NCBI GenBank assembly: GCA_020891255.1
Contig: BQFW01000007.1
Span: 1,488,001-1,552,000, forward strand
Direction of reading: 5' to 3'
DNA length: 64,000 nucleotides
From: Entomortierella parvispora E1425
Taxonomy: Eukaryota; Fungi; Mortierellomycota
The translations under genes were made by a program, and so were the position numbers. A model generated the notes under the pieces. That model ran no database searches, had not been told where the DNA came from, and worked only from the letters and a program-made list of their open reading frames with translations. The stretch's first letter is position 1; each line of letters begins with the position of its first letter. Of the stretch, positions 4,358 through 37,200 are shown in pieces.

Positions 4358-4542
4358 AAAAAAAGGGACTCAAAACAATAAAATCAACAACATACAGTGT
4401 AGAATAACGTTTTATCTATGAAGCTTTCAAACTGAGCGAAAGGGTTTCTGGTTTTTTTTCTTAAAAAAAAAAAGATGATAATCGAAATAGCAAGAATATT
4501 AAATAGTATAGGCCCAAAAGTAGGGGGGTAAAGCTTCCTATG

Positions 4543-23941: not shown

Positions 23942-24386
23942 TGTTCATGGGAAATGAGGACGAAGAGATAGTGGAGGAAGCAGACGACTTTATTCCGTTT
24001 TGTTTTTCATTTGTTTATTATTGTTTTCTCAGCCCTGTTTGAACTTGATATTTTTATTCCTTTGCTTGCACTCATCCCTTTCCTTTATTTTTTTCTTTCT
24101 CCTTTTCCCTCGCTCTCTCTCACATCATTCAAACCTATTATCGCAGTTGCGACCATGTAAATATTATTCTTCAGAGTCGAATAAAACGAACGAAAGACAA
24201 CATCAGACGACAAAAGGGGACCAAACTTGCGCACTTTTTGCCGCCACGCTTTTTGCCATTCCAATGATTCCGCTCCCAGGGGGTGCACTTTTTTTCGCTT
24301 TCCACCTTGATCACCCCTTTCATCCTTTCTTTCCCTTTTTTTTGAAGGACGTCTTACATTACTGGACCAAGCTTTTTTCAGGACCC

Positions 24387-26629
24387 ATGGAGACAACAAC
24401 AGGAATAGGGATCTTGCACCTCCCTACAGAGGTCCTGGAGTTGGTCTGTCAACAGCTCAGCCAAGCTACGCTTCGATCCAGCGCTCGACTGGTCTCGAAG
24501 CTATGGAACGTCATTTGCACTCGCTACATTCACCGGACAGTGGTTTGGACCCCCTTGTCAGTGCAGAATGACCAGCGGCTGCTAGAGGCACTCCAGACAA
24601 GAGGCTCTGGCCAGCAAGGCGGAGAAGGAAGAGGCGGAGGGGCAAGGGTAGCCATCCACTCACTCGAGTGCCGGATTCAACCAGACAATCTCAAAGACTT
24701 TTTTCTTGGCCTAGAACCAAAGATTCCAGGACCGATGACCATGGTAGAGAAGGTCGATGCCTGGAAAGCCTTCCTACAGCTGCTTCTCACAACACCTTAC
24801 GAGTTGCTGCAGGACGACAAGGACGACCAGCAGAATTCAAGACTTGAGAGCCAAGACCATGGCAAGAGTCGACCGTGCGTGATGGACAAGATGCGAAGGC
24901 TTCGATTTTACTGCAGTCAGTTTACGCCCATCCGAGCCGGGATCGAGCAAGCTTTGGCTGGCTCTCACTTTGGCTCACTTCAGACCCTCGAGATCCGTAT
25001 CCAGGTCGAGACGTATCGTAATCTGGGATTTTTATTCTTTTGGACAATTGTCCGGTGCTACGACAGGTGAAGGTCTCGGGACCACAGGAAGGAGGTTTGG
25101 ACCTTGTCTCTGCATTCGAAGAAGAGAATGAAGAAGCTGAGCTGACTTGGGGGCCACGGCCTTATTTCAACCCGAAGCGGACGCGTCTTCTTGCTGCAAG
25201 GGCGGCGATCCAAAAGGTGACTCGGCAGCCACAGGACCCGGACCTTGGACGAGAACGACAATACAGACTAGAAGTGTTGGACTTGATCCGCGTCAATGCC
25301 CGACAAGAGGACCTGGAACGGATCGCCCACACCTGTCCCTATCTCCAAATTTTTCGAACTATTGATTTCCTTCCAGGACTTCGTACAAAGTCGATTGTTT
25401 TCAAGGAGGGTGAAGCGGCTCTCCTTCAACGCCATGCCCGAAAATCCCTTTTGGAAAAGGACGGGATTCTTCAACATTTCAAAGCATCCTGTCCGCTGTT
25501 GAGCTCGTGTGAGGTGATCCCCAAGACATGGGGACTGGGACTGACGTATTCTCGACGACTCTTCCGACATTCGTTGATTCTGCCTCATCTCCAGAGCGTC
25601 ACGCTGTGCAGTGCGCATCGGGAAATGGACGATGCGAGGGAAGAAGAGGCGTATGACAGCGATGAGGAGGAGGGGTTTTATTACGACAGGATCCATTGGC
25701 CTTTATCCGACGAATCTGGATTCCAAACCGTGGGGTTCTTGTCTCGGCTCACGACTCTAGAGATCCAAAGGACGAGTTTCTTTGCTTTTTATTCTCGGCT
25801 GTTGAACCAGCTCTTGTGCTTGACCCCGAACCTGCTGCATTGCATCGCGGCTGAAGAATGCTTTAGCGCACGGCTTCTTAATTCAGAATCAGACTTGACC
25901 ACGACCACCGCGACCGCGACCGCTACCACATCAGAGCAAGAGACGACAAGATGGATCTATGGCCCTCCTTCTGAGGAACAGAACGAGAGCTCTGCCACGT
26001 TAGAAGATACCCAAAATGACGGCCAGGAGCCTGGTTTTGCAGTGTCAACGATTCAGGTGCCCAAGGTCTGGCAGTGCAGACTCCTTCGAACGTTGCACTT
26101 GAGAGTCAGATGGAACCATTCGGCATCGGCCCTTTCACTCATCGGGATCTATGTCAAGCAACACCAGCTCTTCCAGAAGCTGACTTTTCTTCAACTGTTC
26201 ATGACCGAGTTGCACCTGGGGCAATGCAAGCGGAGGCCTCCAGAGCCAGGAAAGGAAGAAGCACAGGCGGCGGTGGTTGTCCCCCGATATAGAAATGACT
26301 TGGAAACGTTTCACGATCTGTTGCCATCTTTGGAGGAATTCAAGTTGGAAGGGCAACATCTGAATGGGTTCCTGCAGGCGTCCGACTTTGAGTTTCTGAG
26401 GAGACGGCTTGACACTGAGAAGAGTGAGGACGGTGGCTGTGAAGATAACAAGAACGGGAACAGGGTGCAAAGCTGCCGTTGGCCATGGCTTCAAATGTTT
26501 GTGATTCGCGTGGCTGAATCTCCTGTTTCTGACTACTCGGCCGTGATAGCAGGGATGGAGGAGATACGGCCTGGCGTCGAGTTTTCCATTGGATTATCGC
26601 CTCCCATGTACTTTACGAAAGATCAATAG
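24387..26629 (+). CDS. F-box/LRR-like protein (Mortierellaceae type), split by an apparent 1-nt frameshift near 25029-25041
   Basis: ILHLPTEVLELVCQQLSQATLRSSARLVSKLWNVICTRYI F-box; two overlapping ORFs (24000-25070, 25040-26629) join if one T is added to a T-run. Confidence 0.7.
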
Positions 26630-28729
26630 ATGTCTTTATCTGAAAGGCCTTTACATGTACATGTACAGTAAAATGAACAGAAAAGGAGCAAGGAACTTTG
26701 TCACGCAGGTCTGTGTCGCGCGGTGGCGTTGACACGGGCCATTCCTTTCTTGATGAGAGCGCATGATGTCTTTTCACTTTTCCATTCTCTCGTTCGTCCA
26801 CCACTTTCCCTCTGCAATCACCCATCCATGGCAGATACACTCACATTCTTCTGTCTCATCAGTGGCAACTCCAGATCGAGCGCTATCAAAATCCGAATTT
26901 CAGACCCACATGCGCACGTCGCTGTTCTCCGGGACGCAATCTTTGACAAAGACCAAGACGCCTTTCCTAATATGAAAGCCCAGAATTTGGTGCTTTGGCA
27001 AGCCACGGTCCCCACCAGCAAAAGTGTAGGAGAAAAGAGCTGCATCGAACTTGATGGTTTGGACGACAAAACGAAGCTTGACACAGGGAGAAGTCTTTCC
27101 GAGCTATTCCCTGTGAGTGCTGACAAAAAACATACATCATTGTCGAGCAACCCAAAGATACGTCCAGTTACACCTACGCTAGAAGATTGGCCTATTCTTT
27201 GAAAGATACTTGGAACTCATCGAGTCTCTTTGGCACTGCGTGCTTGACCTTTTTGCCTTGCTTCATAGCTTTGAAAAGACACGGAGAAGGAGATGCAGGT
27301 GAGTGATTGTCTTTTTGCTTTTGTGGCCAATCAGTCTGACATCAATTTTCACATCACCTCGTCGTGCCCCATGCATGCGGTAGTTGCTAATTCTTGGCTG
27401 CCACCCCTTTTGTACAACCCTTTTTTTGTAACTAGGATCCTCTTCCAAGAAGCAGTGTCTTGATATGACCACGTTCAAGGGAGCCATAGCAGCGGCTAAT
27501 CTTACCCAACGGGCAGTAGTGGAGGGCGAGATTGATCTTTCCCTTCTGAATAACAAGCAAAGAGTCGCTCTGCTTGGTGTCCTTGGAGAGGATGTCGTCA
27601 GGTCTGACAATTTCAAGTCTTTGATTCTGGCTGCCGTTGAGCTACGAAACGCCGACATGGGAGAACTGGGCGAAATCAAGGCCGCCGATGGCTCAAAGTT
27701 TCCTAGCGCCAAAGTAAGTGATCTCTATGTTAGACAGGCCTACAAGGAACTTTATGGAGACATCTTCAGAATGTTCGAGAGAAGAGTGAACGAGATTGTT
27801 GTTACAGGTACATCTGGGATCGGCAAATCGGTCTTCCTGGTGTACATGACCATCCGACTTCTTGCTGAGAGCGACGATAACGAGCCCCCTATCGTCATTT
27901 TCCACACAAGCCGGGGCGATGAATGCTACGCCTTTGCGGGATGCTGGACTGTCCGATACAGAAAAATCGAAGACTTCAGGCCTTTCCTTACTCTGTCCGA
28001 GACGTGGTATCTTGCAGATAGCTCTCCTGCTCCAGTACTCAGTAAGGCCAGGACCGTCATTGCAACTTCGCCCGAGATTCTTTTTTCCGAATCCGTCTCT
28101 TACCACGATATCGACAAAAATGTGGCGTGGCGTTATTACTTGGCGCCATGGACTCTAGCAGAATTAACGACATGCCGAAACATTGTTAAAGACTTCAACA
28201 GGGTTCCGTTGCATGTCATGGAAGACACCTACTTGAAGATCGGCGGCGTACCGGGATATGTTCTTGCTAGGGCAATGCAGGTAAAGCGGAGGTTTGACTT
28301 TTCATACGTTGGTCATCGACGAGATAGGACGACCTGCTGTTGTTGATTTGGAAATGCCCTGATTTCTTTGAATCTGGATTTATTGTTGGAAATGAGCTAA
28401 CAATTGCAGTTCTCCCTGAACCAGTTCGTTGGCTGGAAGTAATCGTGTCTCCCGACAATCTTGAGAGTGTCAGAAAGAGGTCATCCGAGCGTCTCGTCAG
28501 AGCTCCCAACAATGTCTACGATCCGGCGATGATGAGGGGCTCTTGGCGCGAGGAAAGACTCGCTAGAGTTCAGTAGCGCCTTGGTTCACCATTGGCCTGT
28601 AGGGGATCATCACGACTGTCGACTGGAATGGGCCTCAACGTATGTTGCTGAGAAGATTACCAATTTATTGAACTAGGATCCTGCACCCAGATGTTAGAGA
28701 GGCTCCCCCAATAAGTGCTACCGGTATTA

Positions 28730-30535
28730 GAGATCTTGCCACAAATATCCATACCTCACAAAACCTAAATTCTCACACCCCTCTGCCTTTTTTTTTTCTA
28801 TTCTCTTCTGATTTTAAAAACTTCATTGACTCTAAACGATGTTCCATGATGGACTGGACTCACTGGGGTCATGTCTACTGAGAACAATGGTACTGAAAAA
28901 AAATAGAAAATACTATGCCTCCTCGTCACTAGAAATTTCACTGTTGTCTGTGTCACTATCAAATTCGCGGTCATCATCGTCACTTTCACTGTAGTTTTCA
29001 TTGTTTTCGAGTCGTCTTTCGTAGAGAATCCGATAGTCCCTCCCAACCTGGACAGTCTTTTTCCAAACAGCAATAAGCTGTGACTCCTGAATGCCAGCGA
29101 AGAGTCCCAAAAGGCGGTTTCGCAGTGACAGCTCAGTCTCGTCCAAGTTAGGATTGGCTGCAATTGGGTTCTTGACCATTCCCCAGACCATTTCAATCGG
29201 CTGTAGCTCGCAATGATACGGAGGTGTCTTGCAAATGGTGTGTCCGTATTCGTGTGCAATTCGGTATGAAGCAAAGGTCTTGGGGATGTTGAGACCTTTG
29301 ATGTGCTCAAGAAGCTCGAGTCTAGACTTGATCTTGCCCCGGTCATTTGTTGGTAGCTCTATGCCATTCTTTTCGAACCACGAATGGATATCTCTCACAC
29401 AGGAGCTTGCTTTCGGTACTGGATTCTCTTCGCGGACATGGTACTTGGCGCCATCCATGTGAATGTGACAAGGCCCATAGTCTTCATGGAGTGTTGTGCA
29501 CAGAGCCTCAAACAATCGCTCAAACAGATCCGCATCAAAGTTACCGTGGTAGTCATGGTAGTCAGGGGCAATACCCGCCTCTCGGACAAAATCAGGAACA
29601 GTCTTCCATAGCTCGTTGTCTGCGGCACGTCCACCCTCTCGACCACGCAATTGACCCTTGACCGGCCAGATGAGGATGCTTTTTCTTGACGAGCTCTGCC
29701 CTGAGCTTGTTGTCAACTCGGAATACCACGAATGCACCGAAAATGACAAGCATTGGCTTTCGTCCTCGCTCATTGACAGAGCCTCCAGAAGGCAACCATG
29801 TCCGAAGACTGTGATGGTCTAGATGACAATATGACTCATCAAGGAACACCTCAGGAACAATTGGAAGACCCTTGGGGTTCAGATTCGAGAGGCGACGCTC
29901 GATGTAAACATCACGATAGTCGATCACCGCTTGGGAGTCATGGAGGATATTCCTCCTGCTTCCTTTGCCGTAATGAAGACCTAGCCGTTTTAATCGACGG
30001 ACCAAGGTTCGCTTCGCGAAAACGATACCGTGTTTTTCCCGCAGCTCCTTCAAAACTAGATTCGTTGTCACAGGCACTCCATCTTTGTTGCATGCCAACA
30101 CAAATTCTCGAATGGCTGCGCCCAAGTCAGTCTCAATGATGTGTTTTGGTCGACCAATGCGTTTCTCCGAAACCTCCCCCACGCCGTTATAAAACTGAAT
30201 AGCTTTCCGCGCCGTATCTGAACCGATCCCAGTTATGAGGGCAAGACGCTTGCGGGCGGTGACTTTGCCACGGTGCTCGTGGAAGGCCCCAGTCCCATTC
30301 AAGTAGCTTTGGACGTTCGCCAGAATGCAGTATTCATTACGAGTCAGTCGTGCTGCATTCCGTTTAAATCGAGGATCCGACATGGTAGAGAGATGGGAGT
30401 TGCATCTCCAGAGAGCTGAGTGGCGTCCCTTTCTCCCCTTGAGTGCGCGAAAAGTCATAACTTTTATTAAGGGGTGGAGATCCATATGAAACCGGACATT
30501 CAAATCAGAGGTATGGATGTTTTTGGCATGGTCTC
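28730..30535 (-). mobile_element. Full-length IS630-Tc1-mariner DNA transposon, 1806 bp, 28-bp TIRs, TA target duplication
   Basis: Left TIR gagatcttgccacaaatatccatacctc (28730-28757) vs right TIR gaggtatggatgtttttggcatggtctc (30508-30535): 24/28 inverted match; TA at 28728-28729 and 30536-30537. Confidence 0.92.
28913..30383 (-). CDS. DDE transposase (about 489 aa if repaired), one frameshift at the A5 run 29680-29684
   Basis: HTH-like GRP...AIREFV...RTLVRRLKRLGLHY; catalytic VFLDESY...HMDGAKYH...PPYHCELQPIEMVWG; 86 residues between the second D and the E. Confidence 0.88.
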
Positions 30536-30591
30536 TATATTCGAAGCCTATGTTCCCCGCACCTTCTGTGATGGAGGATGGTCCTTTTCGA

Positions 30592-30790
30592 TGAAAGTCT
30601 GGATTGTTCTTTCTGACAGACCGTCCGTCGGCTGGTGATACGCTGTGGACACTCTCAGGCGTGTACCAAGTCTGGAGAACAACCAGGTCAAGAGCTCGGA
30701 ACAGAAACGAGCATCGCTATCAGACACGGTGGATGCTAGGAGACCATGTAATCGGACGACTTCTTGAAGAACAAGTCGGCCAAATAAAGA
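30592..30790 (-). mobile_element. Ty3/gypsy LTR-retrotransposon integrase core fragment
   Basis: ADLFF/EVVRLHGLLASTVSDSDARFCSELLTWLFSRLGTRLRVSTAYHQPTDGLSERTIQT, a degenerate form of the rve motif VRLHG.P..IVSDRD..F.S...STAYHPQTDG.SER. Confidence 0.85.
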
Positions 30791-32655
30791 CCCACAGCAG
30801 AAAAACAAAAAAGTTGTCAAGAAACACCTGTGGTGACCATGGAAACGACGCCCATCAGACCAAAAAGTGGTTCATGGAACGATGCATGTCGCCTCTGTTG
30901 AAGTTGATTGGGTAATGAATGTGAATGAAACGTTGCTTTGCCGTGGTTTTCGTGTTTTCCCCTCACTCTCTCCCGGTGTAACAAAGCGGACCGCATTGCC
31001 TCATTGTGCGACATGAAGCAATAATCTCTCCGCTCCGACCTCTCTCTTTGCTTTCTTGCCAAGTTTCATGATCGGGGGAGCAAGCAGCGCAACCACTCGT
31101 CGTGGGACAGCCTGTGGTCCAGCGCACATGGCGCATTCACAGGAGGACGGACGTTCTTCTACAGCGACTTTTCTAACCCCCCCTTTTTTTTTGTACAGAA
31201 TCGGTTTCCTCGGTCGTTGCGCTTTGTCTGGCATCCGGGTACGGGCAAGGACCCCCACACGGAGATCCGGGATGCCTTCACCCCACACAGTTGAGCAATG
31301 GTTAATCGACCTTGGAGAACCTTTGCTCTCTTCACCTTGCCCTTGCCTTTTTTCTGCACTGGGGTTTCCATTGTGGTGCAAAGCTAGTGGCGAGTAGCTC
31401 AAACCGCAAGCCCTCTGCTCTTTTTTCTCTCTCTCCACTTTCTCACCCGTTCGTTTTAGTCCTTGGCAATTGAATGGACTGAGACAAACAAGGTTGTCTA
31501 TCCGATCCCTGGTGGCAAGAGGCCAATAAGCCGACCAGCCACTCCCTTCCAATCTTCAAGGCACAGGTACGCACTGCGACTACCATACTTTCTTCTGGTT
31601 CGCGGCCGATCTTCAAGGTTGGATTTTTTTTTTGTCAAGGTTGGAATTAGGCCTTTGACGCGTGAGCGAATGAGATCAAAGGAGCCCAACAAACCCCTGG
31701 CTTGTAGAAAACCCAGGATTGGTCGGTCCTGGTTCTCGTTAATTTAGTTTTCTTTCCCCTGTTCGGCAGTCTCCTGATTCATTCATCTCGACAACTCAGT
31801 TAAAAAGACGCCAAATTAGCCTCCCTCCAACGACATGTCACTGTTCGCCCCTGCAATGTTCAATTGCGCCTCAGAGTTTTGCACCTTCCTCCTTCCGCCT
31901 CATTCATCCACAACCGTTTTTTTTGGCCCCTGTGATCGATCGCCTTTTTTGCGTTTGTTTGTGTTTTTCCGTTTCGAAAAAAAAGTGGCAATGAATGGGG
32001 GAAGGGTCAAGTCAGTCAGTCCGTTGGCTTTGAAAGACGTGCAGCGTGGCTTGATGGTGGCACAATGTCCATTGGGCAGGGTAAAAGTCCACATGTGTCC
32101 ATTGCCCTAATTTGTCCTCACAGCGCGTTTAAATTGCGGTTTCTATTGTTTGCACAAGGAACGAGCGTCATGCTCTCTCGCCACTGTGTGGTGGCAGTGG
32201 TGGCCCGGTTCTCCCCCCTCTCTCACTGTAGACTACTCTTTCTTTTTCTCTTGAGGAAATAAGGTATAGCGTTTTTTTGGATGTGGACAAAGTACATGTA
32301 CAAGGCAGGAAGGGAAACAGGAAGGGGTGGTTAGAGTTGAATAATCCCCGACAAATCGAACCTGTGGACCCATTCTTCCTCTTTCAACTTTCAACAGTTG
32401 AGATGTGTGGGCGATGATCAAGAATGTCGCAAAGATATAAAAGAAAGGCCTTTCTTTGCTTGTTTTGAAAGGGTTCTTCATCTCTTCTCTCTCTTTTTTT
32501 TTGGTCATCAAAAAAAATAAACGCGATCCCCCCACAAACACTCCTTTCACTGTTGCATCTTTGACAACAGCACAGCTCCTTGTCTTCTTCCTCCTTTCCC
32601 TTCAACCTACTCCTCTCTCTCCCTCTCCCTCTGCCTCTACCTCTCTTACAACAAG

Positions 32656-34041
32656 ATGCGTTTGGTACTCTCGGCTCTTGTAGCCCAGTCCTTGTGGACA
32701 CTCACACTCTTGAACAACCTTTCTGTCGTTGATGCTCTCACCCTCCCTTCCAACGCCGGTACTCTTGATATTGCCTCCAGGGCCACTGTGCCCCACCTTG
32801 GCTCTTCCTCCTCTCCTCTGGCTCATCTCGAAGTGGAGGCCGCTGGTTCGGCCTCCAAGGGAAAGAAGCCCAAACCCGCCCGTCCCGCCTACAGCTGGAG
32901 CCTTGAATACATGCCCCCGACCCTGGCCGATCTCAAGAGCGCCCTGCATTTGGAGGACAGTCTGACCAGCAAAGATGAATTCGATATCGTGCCCGATCCC
33001 ATGCCTTCCAGTGGCAAGCAAAAACGTAGCCTTGATGTTGATGTCAATGTCGATGCGGAAGCGGCCGCGAATGGAGGAGACATGACCCTCGCGGCGACCT
33101 CCAACAAGAACAAACGAGTCCTTCGATCCTTGTATCCGGCGCATTCCTACTCGCAGTCCAAGAACCCTCATGCTTCGTTCACCTCGACCCCGTTGTCGAC
33201 CAAGGCCTTCCAGGGTCCTACGGCCCACTACGTTCGCCTGGAGTACCAAATGCTGTTCCAGCCGGGCTTCAAATGGGTCAAGGGAGGTAAGTTGCCCGGT
33301 ATCTTGGTCGGCACCGAAGAAGGATGTGGTGGCAACGCCGGGTGCTCGGGCGGTGGCACGGCCGAAAACTGTTTCTCCACCCGCATGATGTGGCGCGCCA
33401 ATGGTGAGGGGGAGCTGTACCTGTACGCCGCCAAATCAGTTTATTTCCCCAGTGCCAAACAACCCAGCTGCAGCAACAGCAAGCGTCGCCTCTTGACCTT
33501 GACAGATCGCGAGCAAGAAGAAGAGCTGGCTCAAAGATTGGCGGAGCAAGAGCGTCGCCGGATCGACGCCCTGCGCTTGCCCGAACCCGATGACGAGTTT
33601 GCAGTGCTCAACAAGCGTGCGGGGGTGGAGGACGAGAGCGGATCCTGCTTGAACGGTTACAAGGTCCAAATCAGCCCTGGTGCCAAGAACGAATGCAACC
33701 CCACCTATGGTATCTCGATCGGCCGAGGCGGTCGGTTCCAGTTCAAGTCGGGCCATTGGCACAACGTCACCCAGGTCGTGCGTTTGAACTCCAAGGGTAA
33801 AGCCGTCAAGGACGGGTACCTGGCTGTGTACCTGGATGGTTACCCGGTCATCAAATCGAAAGATTTGGTTCTACTCAAGAACGGCTATGACAGCTCTAAG
33901 AATGCTCCTTCCCATCAGGTCAAGTTTATGTTCTCGTCCTTCTTTGGTGGCCATACCAAGGACTATGCCACACCGGTGAAGCAGTGGATCGCTTGGAAGG
34001 ACTTTTCCATGGCCTCCAGTCCTACCAACTTGTGGGGCTAA
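32656..34041 (+). CDS. Secreted polysaccharide lyase family 14-like protein (alginate/glucuronan lyase-like), single exon
   Basis: Signal peptide MRLVLSALVAQSLWTLTLL...VDA; FQPGFKWVKGGKLPG...CSGG...CFSTRMMWRANGEGELYLY...YGISIGRG.F.F..GHW...TQVVRLN...MFSSFFGG. Confidence 0.85.
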   Translation: MRLVLSALVAQSLWTLTLLNNLSVVDALTLPSNAGTLDIASRATVPHLGSSSSPLAHLEVEAAGSASKGKKPKPARPAYSWSLEYMPPTLADLKSALHLEDSLTSKDEFDIVPDPMPSSGKQKRSLDVDVNVDAEAAANGGDMTLAATSNKNKRVLRSLYPAHSYSQSKNPHASFTSTPLSTKAFQGPTAHYVRLEYQMLFQPGFKWVKGGKLPGILVGTEEGCGGNAGCSGGGTAENCFSTRMMWRANGEGELYLYAAKSVYFPSAKQPSCSNSKRRLLTLTDREQEEELAQRLAEQERRRIDALRLPEPDDEFAVLNKRAGVEDESGSCLNGYKVQISPGAKNECNPTYGISIGRGGRFQFKSGHWHNVTQVVRLNSKGKAVKDGYLAVYLDGYPVIKSKDLVLLKNGYDSSKNAPSHQVKFMFSSFFGGHTKDYATPVKQWIAWKDFSMASSPTNLWG

Positions 34042-34282: not shown

Positions 34283-37200
34283 CTAGTTGGGTACTGGGGT
34301 ATCCATCAGATTGCGAGGTGCGGCTTTGGTTGTAGGCGAAGCGACAGTATCAACGGCCGTCTCATCCGCGGTGACCTCCTCTAGTGGCGACGACTTGGTC
34401 GCCATGGCCAGCATCAACGCCGGCAAGTATTGTTCACAAAAGGATGAGAAGTAAAACTAAGATGGTGCACGCGCAACCACAAAAGAGAAAAAAAGGAAAA
34501 AAAAAAAAAAAAAAGGCGTTAGAACCACATTGCTCAACAAATTGCTCGCAAAGACGGCCTACAACATCGATGACGAAAATGCTTTACCTCGTGCTGGCTG
34601 TTGTGATCTCCCACAAAGTTATGTGCCAACTCATGAGCCAAGGTAAAGAACCAGTAGATCATTCCCTCATCTCTCGCAGAGATGGTCTTGCCCTGCACCT
34701 TCTTTTGACTCGTTCCTGCACCTTCATCATGACCCAAAGCAACATAGTATCGCCAGTTGAAAAACAAGGCCCCACCTCGGTTGAACGCGATCGTTGAGCC
34801 TTCAGGATCAAAGTACACGTGCATGGTCGAGGGCTGCAATTGAAAAACTTCCTGAGCCAACACCATCAGCAGCTTGACAAATCGAGCCAAAGACTTTAGG
34901 TTTTCCTTGGTCATGATGGCATCCGCGTCACACGATGTATCCAAGTACAGCTCGAGCTCGCCCGCATGTCCAGCAAAGTTCAATTGATGTCCCGGCTTGA
35001 CGTCGCAGTATGAGCTTGTCAAAACCTCAGAGACCTGAGAGACGGTCGGCTCACTTTTGATATCATCCCGACCGTTTGAGCGACAGTTGGAGACGGCCGC
35101 CTTGAGAGACTGCTGGAGATTTTGTTGGTAATCAGGAGAGAATCCCTTGATCACTGGGTTGAGCTGGGGAGGTGGCGGGGTTCCCTTGGTCGTAGGTGCA
35201 CCGGATCCAGAACTTTCAATACCAGTCAAGGTTCCATTCTGAGCCAAATTAGAGGCTGCCTTGACAATACTAGAGTCTCGTCCCCATGTCTTCAAACGAC
35301 TAAAGAATCCTCCTCCTCCAGTAGAGCTGGTGGAGGATGTTGAGGCTTCCTGGGTGTGGCTTGTAGTATTTGCCACAGGAGCAGGTGGCAGTGTGGATAT
35401 AGTCGAGACGTTCGAGGGTTCCTGGGCAGTGGGGAACGATCCTGGGACAGGAGGGACGGGCCTGTTGGTGTTTCCATTTTTGATCCTAGGATATCCCCCG
35501 TCGAGCAACTTCATAGTTACACGCCGCACATGGTCTTGTGTCTCTTTGGAAATCATCTCTGTCAAGTACGCAGGGTCACAGTCCGGGAACACCTCTTTCA
35601 ACTGGGCCAGGTATTCTGCTGTTTGCTTAGGTCCCAGTTTGGCACTGGCAGCAGCCTGAGCAGCGGCTGCCGCATCTGCTTTCGCAGCTGCCTCTACCCG
35701 CGCAATCTCTGCTTTTTTGGCATTCAAAATTCTGTCCACTTGGAAGCCCTAGAAAAACAATAGAAGTGGAATAATGGTAAGTAACATTCCATGTAGTGTA
35801 TACACAGAATGGACATTGCAGTGAGCCTTCTTCCTTACCTTTCGCTTCAAGCTAACCAAGCTCGAGTGGAGTAGATTGGACCACCAGATTGAGTCATTCA
35901 GCTTCTTTTTCTTCAGCATCAGTGTCGCAAGCGCCTCGGCGATATCAAAGTAATCCATGTCACCCTTGGCCGTGACTAGGAGGTAGTATGCCTTGGCTTG
36001 ATCTTGAACGATGCAGGCTGTTGTCGATTCAACATGGGTTGCACCTGTTGGTATAAATTCCCGGCGTCGTTGGATCTCAGGAACATGGCGCACCTTCAGT
36101 TTTGTCGTCAGCCAGTCAAGATTGAAGTTGAGTCTGTTGGCAGGGTGGTCACTCAAAAGTAGAGGAGCACGTTCAACAATTAGCTCCTGCAGGCTCTCGG
36201 ATCTTCGAGTGACTGCCAGAGATCCTTGGGGTCGACAGGTTTCCTTGACTTGGCGCGAGATCCATGTACTACCCAGCGTTTCATATAGGTTCTCCAAATG
36301 ACTTTCCATCGGGGCGCTAAGAGGCGTAAAGATCTGCTGAAGCACCGTGTCGTCAATCAAATAGATGTCGCTAGCCTTGGCCAGCTTGTACTGAACCACA
36401 ATCTGACCCAGATTTGCATTCTCCTCGCCCTGCTCGCCTCCAGCTTCCGTCGTCTCGTCCTCAGCGATTCGTTTTTCGGCCAACAAGAAGGGCGTGCGAA
36501 CCATCTCTGCCATAAGAGTCTTGTGACCTCCAATAACATGCATATGGGAGGCGATCTGGCGAAGGATAGACTTGTAGCTCTCCACACCTCCATTCCTGTT
36601 CAAGAAATCCTGAGGTGATCTCACGACAAGCTGCGCCAACTCAACCGGTGTGGGTTCCTCCTTGACACCACAGGCCTTCAAAAACAGGTTGGCCGTTCTT
36701 CCAAAGTCAACAGTCGTCAAAAGGTCTTGGTGATATGCCGAGTCCTTCTTGTCAAAGTAGCAGCCTTGAGGTTCTACGTAGTTTTTGCCGGTATCATCCA
36801 ACGGAATGAACTTGAGTATCCTTAAAGCCGACCAATGATGATGACCAAACTCGCCTTGAAATTTCCCAAGGAACTCAAAGATCTGGCGCGCCTTTTCCTT
36901 GGTGGCTGGCGGTTTCTGAGACAGCCGCTCCAAAAGTCGGACAGGTAGAGGATTTTCACGGATGCCGAGCATTGCAGCATGGATTCGGAGATCCTCTCGA
37001 AGAACTGGGAATTCCATCACACTGCACGCAGGATTGGAAAAGCAGCCCTAGCACAGTCAGATGGGACCACGGAAGAGATGTTAATATAACTATCTATTGC
37101 TAAATCCAAGTCCAAACTCCATCTGTTTCGTCATTTACCTCTGGTGTTTCCATGGTATTGGTTGTGGTTGGCAAAAACGCGACTTTATACTTGCTAGGAC

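Follow-up and report, generated by a model that had tools for sequence, protein, structure and literature searches.

A 1.8-kb transposon of Entomortierella parvispora with an 86-residue D-E spacer and its probable membership in the Sailor group

Introduction

Between positions 28,728 and 30,537 of a 64,000-nucleotide stretch of Entomortierella parvispora E1425 DNA (contig BQFW01000007.1, positions 1,488,001 to 1,552,000; here called the window), inverted repeats enclose a transposase gene in which 86 residues separate the second catalytic aspartate from the catalytic glutamate. Is this wide spacing peculiar to one copy, or does it place the element in a recognized group of DNA transposons? A preliminary description, made from the letters of the window, read the locus as a complete transposon of the IS630-Tc1-mariner (ITm) assemblage in an early-diverging fungus, and named the Sailor group or a new fungal sublineage as its place. 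The host is such a fungus, Entomortierella parvispora of the Mortierellomycota, whose genome encodes the protein EMPS_07014 at 100% identity over 406 amino acids (aa). As for completeness, the element is structurally complete, but the window copy is frameshifted, and intact ones are found only at other loci of the genome.

We conclude, with a probability of roughly 0.9, that an autonomous cut-and-paste DNA transposon (class II) of the Sailor group, within the ITm assemblage, occupies this region with one of its copies. In the proposed mechanism a single intronless gene encodes the transposase. The 28-bp inverted ends would be bound by its paired helix-turn-helix (HTH) region at the N-terminus. 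Excision of the element would be the task of its RNase-H-like domain, with the residues D216, D344 and E431, and the excised element would be pasted into a TA dinucleotide, which would thereby be duplicated. The catalytic domain consists of a Tc1/mariner core and three inserts, one of 47 aa between the first and the second aspartate (D1-D2) and two of 12 aa and 38 aa between the second aspartate and the glutamate (D2-E); the latter two give rise to the DD86E signature.

Ends of the element and target-site duplication

The inverted-repeat arms at 28728-28757 and 30508-30537 are 30 nt long and 87% complementary. They match at 26 of 30 positions including TA and at 24 of 28 without the terminal TA, which are the imperfect 28-bp terminal inverted repeats (TIRs) initially described. 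The TA initially seen on both sides is present in all 13 full-length copies that a DNA search revealed in the E. parvispora assembly (38.9 Mb, 20 contigs). Every copy reads TA-GAGA...TCTC-TA, with no constant base farther out. Both ends begin with GAGA directly after TA (GAGATC and GAGACC), and TATA occurs on both sides in only two of the 13 copies.

The status of TA is revealed by an empty site. A paralogue of the flank, 92% identical and situated at about 1.70 Mb on the same contig, reads ACCGGTAT-TA-TATTCGAAG, with a single TA. TA is therefore the target-site duplication, and the element proper extends from 28730 to 30535 and comprises 1806 bp. The paralogous sequence (G000:C7:1701838-1702441, L042) corresponds to window positions 28128-28727 and 30538-30576, lies 185 kb away and is the only one found; to the right of the insertion point, its similarity to the flank extends for only about 40 bp. 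The TIR-bounded structure and the duplicated TA are those of the ITm assemblage. A search of the element for internal direct repeats of the IR/DR type yielded only short matches at chance level.

The transposase

Two overlapping minus-strand open reading frames (ORFs) between the arms, of 303 aa and 286 aa, are the halves of one protein. The 303-aa ORF gives a weak match to HTH_33 and the 286-aa ORF matches DDE_3, and reading in three frames located the break between them at a run of T residues at 29680-29684. The frame was analyzed in natural intact copies (e.g. L005:1553-3121:+), not in a repaired version of the window copy. The intact frame has 523 codons; translation probably starts at M35, which yields a predicted protein of 489 aa. 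This start is suggested by the homologues, 11 of 42 of which begin at residue 35 and 28 of 42 between residues 35 and 56, by the paralogue in the same genome, which also begins at M35, and by the low model confidence of residues 1-32. Confidence is likewise low in the acidic tail past about residue 500.

The Pfam DDE_3 match lies above the cut-off, and a profile of the family recognizes the catalytic domain of Sleeping Beauty SB100X (E 1e-5), with PPYHCELQPIE aligned to SPDLNPIEN. A structure was predicted with AlphaFold (AF2) from 43 relatives, with a mean confidence score (pLDDT) of 82.5, and compared with known structures by Foldseek (PDB) and VIA-align. The top Foldseek matches were Mos1 and Sleeping Beauty. 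In VIA-align, the transposase domain of SETMAR scored Z 17.6 with a root-mean-square deviation (rmsd) of 2.6 A over 190 of 197 residues, followed by Mos1 (Z ~17.4) and Sleeping Beauty (Z 16.3), with retroviral integrases at Z ~10 or less. Full-length Mos1, taken from its paired-end complex, aligned from residue 43-48 onward and included the helical N-terminal region; a weak HTH_33 match covers residues 140-187. The DDE_3 match, the SB100X profile and the modelled fold point to the two domains of an ITm transposase: a bipartite HTH region at the N-terminus and a DDE/D domain with the RNase-H-like fold typical of Mos1 and Sleeping Beauty.

How the spacer is counted depends on the choice of the glutamate. 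The intact frame has 127 residues between D216 and D344 and 86 between D344 and E431, compared with 81 to an earlier glutamate in CELQ. In the alignment, the E431 column contains glutamate in every DD34-41E row. Because E431 aligns with the NPIE glutamate of Sleeping Beauty, DD34E and IS630 proteins, 86 is the correct count, in agreement with the preliminary description.

The spacer inserts are shared with all relatives

A word-based protein search (5.8 billion clusters) identified 110 relatives of the transposase, many in Rhizophagus, several in Mortierellaceae, and others in Rhizopus and in the oomycetes Aphanomyces and Phytophthora; the closest proteins are metagenomic and 54-62% identical. 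As judged by motif and alignment, the D-E spacing is mostly 81-89 in 42 eukaryotic or metagenomic rows and 82 (86 in one) in 19 extracted bacterial and archaeal rows. The D-D spacing is 127-137 in most of the close eukaryotic relatives and 90 in the bacterial and archaeal rows. Ordinary DDE_3 elements of the same fungus are DD34E, and IS630-type elements in five bacterial genomes that also carry DD82E proteins are DD34-41E.

The inserts were mapped by the gap pattern of an E-INS-i alignment against canonical DD34-41E rows. In Sailor the D-E spacer ranges from 78 to 111 residues, with 82 the most frequent value; relative to Tc1-like transposases it is enlarged by inserts of 13 aa and 36 aa, and an additional insert of 12-15 aa lies between D1 and D2 (Shi et al. 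2021, PMC8533490). The two D2-E inserts of the E. parvispora protein fit this arrangement. The D1-D2 insert, with 47 aa, is larger than the published one because of a eukaryote-specific stretch of 30 aa: residues 279-308 are absent from 19 of 19 bacterial DD82E rows. Residues 278-288 have a low pLDDT.

Could the element nevertheless be a canonical DD34E Tc1-like transposon with extra D-E residues private to this copy or family? In its favor, the Pfam match is weak (32.8 bits) and concerns only the general DDE_3 model, and ordinary DD34E elements of the DDE_3 type do occur in the same genome. Arguing against it is the presence of the inserts at the same places in the 42 eukaryotic or metagenomic and the 19 bacterial or archaeal rows. 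Moreover, after removal of the insert columns the protein remains with the long-spacer rows across a 95/92 branch of the tree described below, apart from the DD34E elements of its own genome. Nesting of the DDE domain inside DD34E families, the outcome that the preliminary description had said would overturn its reading, was not seen in this tree. We regard a canonical DD34E origin as extremely improbable. According to the alignments, the spacer inserts are not private to the window copy; they are common to all relatives found.

Position of the transposase relative to Sailor

The tree of the DDE domain comprised 80 rows and the 173 core columns that canonical proteins have in common with long-spacer ones; the insert columns were left out, and the computation was made with IQ-TREE under LG+C20. 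The window transposase belongs to a clade of 29 rows (support 100/99) that also contains protein P0037. All rows with a long spacer are set apart from the DD34-41E rows by a 95/92 branch. A group of 39 (93/96) is made up of the eukaryotic rows. P0037 is the published Sailor transposase of R. clarus: it is encoded in BLAL01000033.1 inside the published coordinates, is 457 aa long and has the spacing DD81E, and our own count of 81 agrees with that given (PMC8533490). Canonical Tc1 (DD34E) was rejected as a class for the element, which has a spacing of 86, not 34, and is separated in the tree from the DD34E elements of its own genome.

Membership in Sailor, as preliminarily proposed, is supported by a spacer of 86 within the range of 78-111, by both D2-E inserts (12 aa and 38 aa) and the extra D1-D2 insert, and by the DDE-domain tree relative to P0037, the sole verified Sailor row. 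Further agreement is found in the supplementary DDE alignment of the published survey, in which Fu-Morsp, Fu-Lobtra and Fu-Oehdia contain FLDESYCHLDH, DYHGNF, GPCxIHxDGAxYH and PPYHCELQPIE (PMC8533490). The same survey lists Sailor in 12 fungi, including two Mortierellomycetes, Mortierella sp. BCC40632 (DD87E) and Lobosporangium transversale (DD88E).

An alternative interpretation holds that the fungal and oomycete elements constitute a new lineage separate from Sailor, marked by the D1-D2 insert of about 30 aa and by TA duplication. It is suggested by the lack of residues 279-308 in all 19 bacterial DD82E rows, the D-D spacing of ~127-137 versus 90, the 93/96 group formed by the 39 eukaryotic rows, and the TA duplication revealed by the empty site. 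However, the same extra segment is present in the published Sailor rows Fu-Morsp, Fu-Lobtra, Fu-Oehdia and those of oomycetes (PMC8533490), and P0037 is itself a published Sailor entry. Since the published set includes both the D1-D2 segment and P0037, the eukaryotic rows are better described as a subgroup inside Sailor than as an outside lineage, and we consider a separate lineage unlikely. The new fungal sublineage that had been considered as the other option does not hold at the superfamily level, because Sailor has already been published from Mortierellomycetes. With its closest protein relatives only 54-62% identical, the element, judged by its sequence, is a new family-level member of Sailor from a fungal class in which Sailor is already on record.

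Several observations weigh against the Sailor assignment. The published target-site duplication of Sailor has 4 bp and is predominantly TATA, with TATT, TAGA and TACA also tabulated, and the TIRs usually begin with GT or CC (PMC8533490). The E. parvispora element has a TA duplication instead of the four-base TATA, and its ends begin with GA instead of GT or CC. The references in the tree were one verified Sailor (P0037), DD34E elements of the fungus itself and bacterial IS630; mariner, maT and usable pogo rows as well as the full reference set of PMC8533490 were absent, and several canonical rows lie on long branches. The separation seen in the tree hence covers own-genome DD34E elements and bacterial IS630 only, with no mariner, SETMAR or Sleeping Beauty rows included. 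A Pfam Transposase_1 search of the same genome yielded no mariner reference. The one pogo candidate (L039, with a single usable DDE_1 frame) was excluded because of its poor alignment, with P-D-Q in the triad columns.

We treat the 4-bp duplication as a descriptive rather than a defining trait of Sailor, and one that was possibly mis-assigned. The entry for Mortierella sp. gives a 'TAGA' duplication and a TIR start of GTCCT, with the printed sequence beginning TAGAGTCCTGGCC (PMC8533490). The window element begins TAGAGATCTTGCC, and from a by-eye comparison of the two starts, the 'TAGA' of Mortierella may consist of TA and the first two bases of the element.

Other ends inspected were those of the R. 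clarus Sailor, which has clean 31-nt TIRs (L015:2789-2819 and 4474-4504 in BLAL01000033.1; 94%). They delimit an element of about 1.7 kb that includes the 457-aa gene. In the published table, '?' stands for both the length and the left end of this Sailor (PMC8533490). Near close metagenomic relatives, TIRs were long in one case (L160, ~120-150 nt) and none were convincing in two others (L159, L161), so that these loci are uninformative for the end motif.

Copies of the element and their mobility

The 13 copies are distributed over six contigs; the only further trace is a distant 125-bp fragment with 73% DNA identity. A genome-wide search with both end sequences, allowing up to three mismatches, returned 13 + 13 matches, all of which are the 26 ends of full copies; neither solo ends nor the miniature inverted-repeat transposable elements (MITEs) that the preliminary description had suggested looking for were found. 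The TIRs thus bound all 13 copies, and their identical boundaries at different sites are not due to chance. The 12 bases outside each copy vary from copy to copy, which identifies the copies as separate insertions.

An alignment of the 13 copies contains only two variable columns, both 1-bp insertions, and no substitutions in 1.8 kb. The window copy and three others share one additional T, which is an A in the coding strand; an extra A occurs in one copy only. The 523-aa frame is intact in eight copies (1809 bp each as aligned) and broken in five. An assembly error could in principle have produced the shared frameshift; however, none of the 13 copies deviates in the much longer runs T10 and A8, which makes a real mutation more likely than an assembly slip. 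The four copies with the same frameshift most likely spread by means of transposase from intact copies, i.e., they would have been mobilized in trans. In three cases two copies are close together, at distances of 17, 20 and 54 kb, although chance alone would give only ~0.22 pairs of this kind (P ~0.0015). Local hopping is a known pattern of Tc1/mariner elements, and the clustered copies match it.

The near-identical copies, the eight intact frames, the frameshift present at four sites and the clustering together indicate a very young family that is probably still mobile or was active until very recently. The evidence is indirect, activity being deduced from copy identity and intact frames. One could instead regard the copies as dead relics or assembly duplications rather than a mobile family, given that five of 13 frames are broken and that the evidence for activity comes from sequence. 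Such an explanation would have to accommodate eight intact frames, flanks that differ in 13 of 13 cases, the distribution over six contigs, and both ends with TA on either side in every copy. Relics, furthermore, would gather substitutions, and there are none in 1.8 kb across 13 copies. This explanation is very improbable.

The origin of a young family can be sought outside or inside the genome. Recent horizontal transfer, claimed to be common for Sailor (PMC8533490), would explain why diverged copies are lacking apart from the distant 73% fragment, why solo ends and MITEs are lacking as well, and why the closest proteins among 5.8 billion clusters are metagenomic and only 54-62% identical while the in-genome paralogue reaches only 49-52%. 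Yet no donor or near-identical element was found in another organism, in searches that may not have covered the genomes closest to this one, the GC content of 0.46-0.50 is similar to that of the surroundings, and vertical persistence followed by a burst from a single surviving old master copy gives an identical picture. Horizontal transfer is accordingly a tentative and rather doubtful proposal.

Features of the element and other loci

The coordinates of the features are collected in Table 1.

Table 1. Features of the E. parvispora element, in window coordinates
Feature	Position	Strand	Evidence
TA target-site duplication, left	28728..28729	.	invariant in 13/13 copies; single TA at the empty paralogous site
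28-bp TIR, transposase 3' side, GAGATCTTGCC...	28730..28757	+	inverted repeat; exactly 13 genomic matches, all at copy ends
Transposase stop codon	28913-28915	-	
Transposase coding region (523 aa in intact copies)	28913..30485	-	ORFs and frames; intact L005:1553-3121:+; Pfam DDE_3, 32.8 bits; fold
E431 codon (PPYHCELQPIE)	29192..29194	-	invariant column; same column as the NPIE Glu in Sleeping Beauty SB100X and in canonical rows
Second D2-E insert, residues 375-412, 38 aa, two helices	29249..29362	-	gap pattern and model; fits the 36-aa Sailor insert (PMC8533490)
First D2-E insert, residues 352-363, 12 aa	29396..29431	-	gap pattern; fits the 13-aa Sailor insert (PMC8533490)
D344 codon (HMDGAKYH)	29453..29455	-	alignment columns
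D1-D2 insert, residues 266-312, 47 aa	29549..29690	-	gap pattern; absent from DD34-41E elements
T5 run (A5 on the coding strand), extra base, frameshift	29680..29684	.	13-copy alignment; T4 in intact copies
D216 codon (FLDESYCH)	29838..29840	-	nearly invariant column, which holds the first Asp in DD34E and IS630 rows
Predicted N-terminal DNA-binding region, ~residues 48-170, two helical HTH-type modules	29976..30344	-	model helices 49-99 and 119-167
Likely start codon M35 (489-aa protein)	30381-30383	-	homologue starts; low-confidence N-terminus
28-bp TIR, transposase 5' side, inward GAGACCATGCC...	30508..30535	-	inverted repeat; exactly 13 genomic matches, all at copy ends
TA target-site duplication, right	30536..30537	.	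13-copy comparison and empty paralogous site

Three further long-spacer relatives are encoded in the genome. A single-copy paralogue at G000:C9:1136341-1137852 (L153:1207-2718:+), annotated as E. parvispora EMPS_07014, has a 504-aa open frame that is 49-52% identical to the multi-copy transposase; it retains the DDE residues (HMDSAKYH), and its spacing is also 86. No convincing TIRs were found in its surroundings, and the locus may represent either an old copy that no longer moves or a domesticated copy. A 602-aa open frame at G000:C1:505170-505487 (L037), with the arrangement D-90-D-131-E, stands on the Sailor side of the tree on a long branch; its spacer of 131 exceeds the published Sailor range of 78-111 (PMC8533490). 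The third relative, a 634-aa open frame at G000:C6:2083256-2084626, is 33-35% identical to P0008.

In the window, the neighboring frames at 24000-26629 (+), 32656-34041 (+) and 35749-37020 (-) belong to ordinary genes (F-box-like, polysaccharide lyase family 14, DUF3684). A short minus-strand frame adjoining the element (30548-30820) looks integrase-like by eye and has no Pfam match. A literature search on transposons of E. parvispora found no paper.

Significance

To our knowledge, Sailor has been defined by computational surveys only, and no experimentally active member is known. That the E. parvispora element is a currently active, autonomous, compact 1.8-kb Sailor, with the empty-site test establishing for at least this Sailor a TA rather than a four-base duplication, is a proposition to which we give about even chances. 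If it is true, the element would be an obvious choice for a first experimental system of Sailor transposition and a tool for insertional mutagenesis in Mortierellomycota. The eight intact identical copies, whose ends are clean and whose TA duplication is verified, occur in a fungus that can be cultured and are a good starting point for testing the function of the ~100 inserted residues. For the window element, one descriptive trait of Sailor is corrected from TATA to TA; if TA holds throughout the group, the 4-bp hallmark of Sailor would be TA plus two conserved terminal bases. For the annotation of the genome, the analysis accounts for 13 loci of about 1.8 kb and draws attention to the three other long-spacer relatives. 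The TA duplication, the signs of recent activity and the compact size go beyond the published survey (PMC8533490).

Comparison with known systems

The Tc1/mariner transposases with solved structures provide one comparison. According to the model, the E. parvispora transposase has the same RNase-H-like fold as Mos1, SETMAR/Hsmar1 and Sleeping Beauty (Z 16-17.6, rmsd 2.5-3.5 A, ~190 of ~200 target residues), and the helical N-terminal region can be aligned with that of full-length Mos1. Like the elements of these transposases, the element duplicates TA, and the third catalytic residue resides in a (N/Q)PIE motif. Sequence identity to Mos1, SETMAR and Sleeping Beauty, in contrast, is only ~12%, and the E. 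parvispora protein has ~100 extra residues in the three inserts of its catalytic domain, so that it is DD86E where Sleeping Beauty is DD34E and Mos1 is DD34D.

The prokaryotic DD82E IS630-like proteins, the bacterial Sailors of the published survey, are ~27-32% identical over ~400 residues, contain the same two D2-E inserts and the similar motifs YLDE, DNAxYH and PPYHPELQPIE, and are not separated from the E. parvispora protein by the 95/92 branch. They differ in being shorter (415-470 aa), in a D-D spacing of 90 versus 127, and in lacking residues 279-308 and the acidic C-terminal tail. Such relatives were found in 183 stretches of species genomes (loci L043-L122) from many bacterial and archaeal phyla, including Desulfobacterota, Legionella, Chlamydiota, Planctomycetota, Bacteroidota, Thiomargarita and archaeal metagenome-assembled genomes (MAGs). 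Delta proteobacterium NaphS2 carries at least ten copies, and the rows from Candidatus Levyibacteriota (L083) and Chlamydiae (L086) are identical across the core columns. Nine prokaryotic species with Sailor are listed in the published survey (PMC8533490).

The published Sailor elements (Shi et al. 2021, PMC8533490) differ from the window element in their 4-bp duplication and their GT or CC ends, for which the window element has TA, as seen at the empty site, and GA. The fungal Sailors listed as full-length are also larger, with 2427 bp in Mortierella sp. BCC40632 and 6979 bp in Lobosporangium transversale versus 1806 bp, and have TIRs of 52-1362 bp versus 28 bp. Copy identity is far higher in E. 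parvispora than in the published fungal Sailors, for which 2-9 copies and TIR identities of 0.92-0.99 are recorded. The proteins, on the other hand, are alike. Both have a long spacer (86 versus 78-111), matching D2-E inserts (12 + 38 aa versus 13 + 36 aa) and an extra D1-D2 insert, and the motifs FLDESYCHLDH, DYHGNF, GPCxIHxDGAxYH and PPYHCELQPIE match those of Fu-Morsp and Fu-Lobtra. The likeness may extend to the DNA, as the first bases printed for the Sailor of Mortierella sp. BCC40632 (Data S1), TAGAGTCCTGGCCAGAAAT, resemble by eye the TAGAGATCTTGCCACAAAT of the E. parvispora element.

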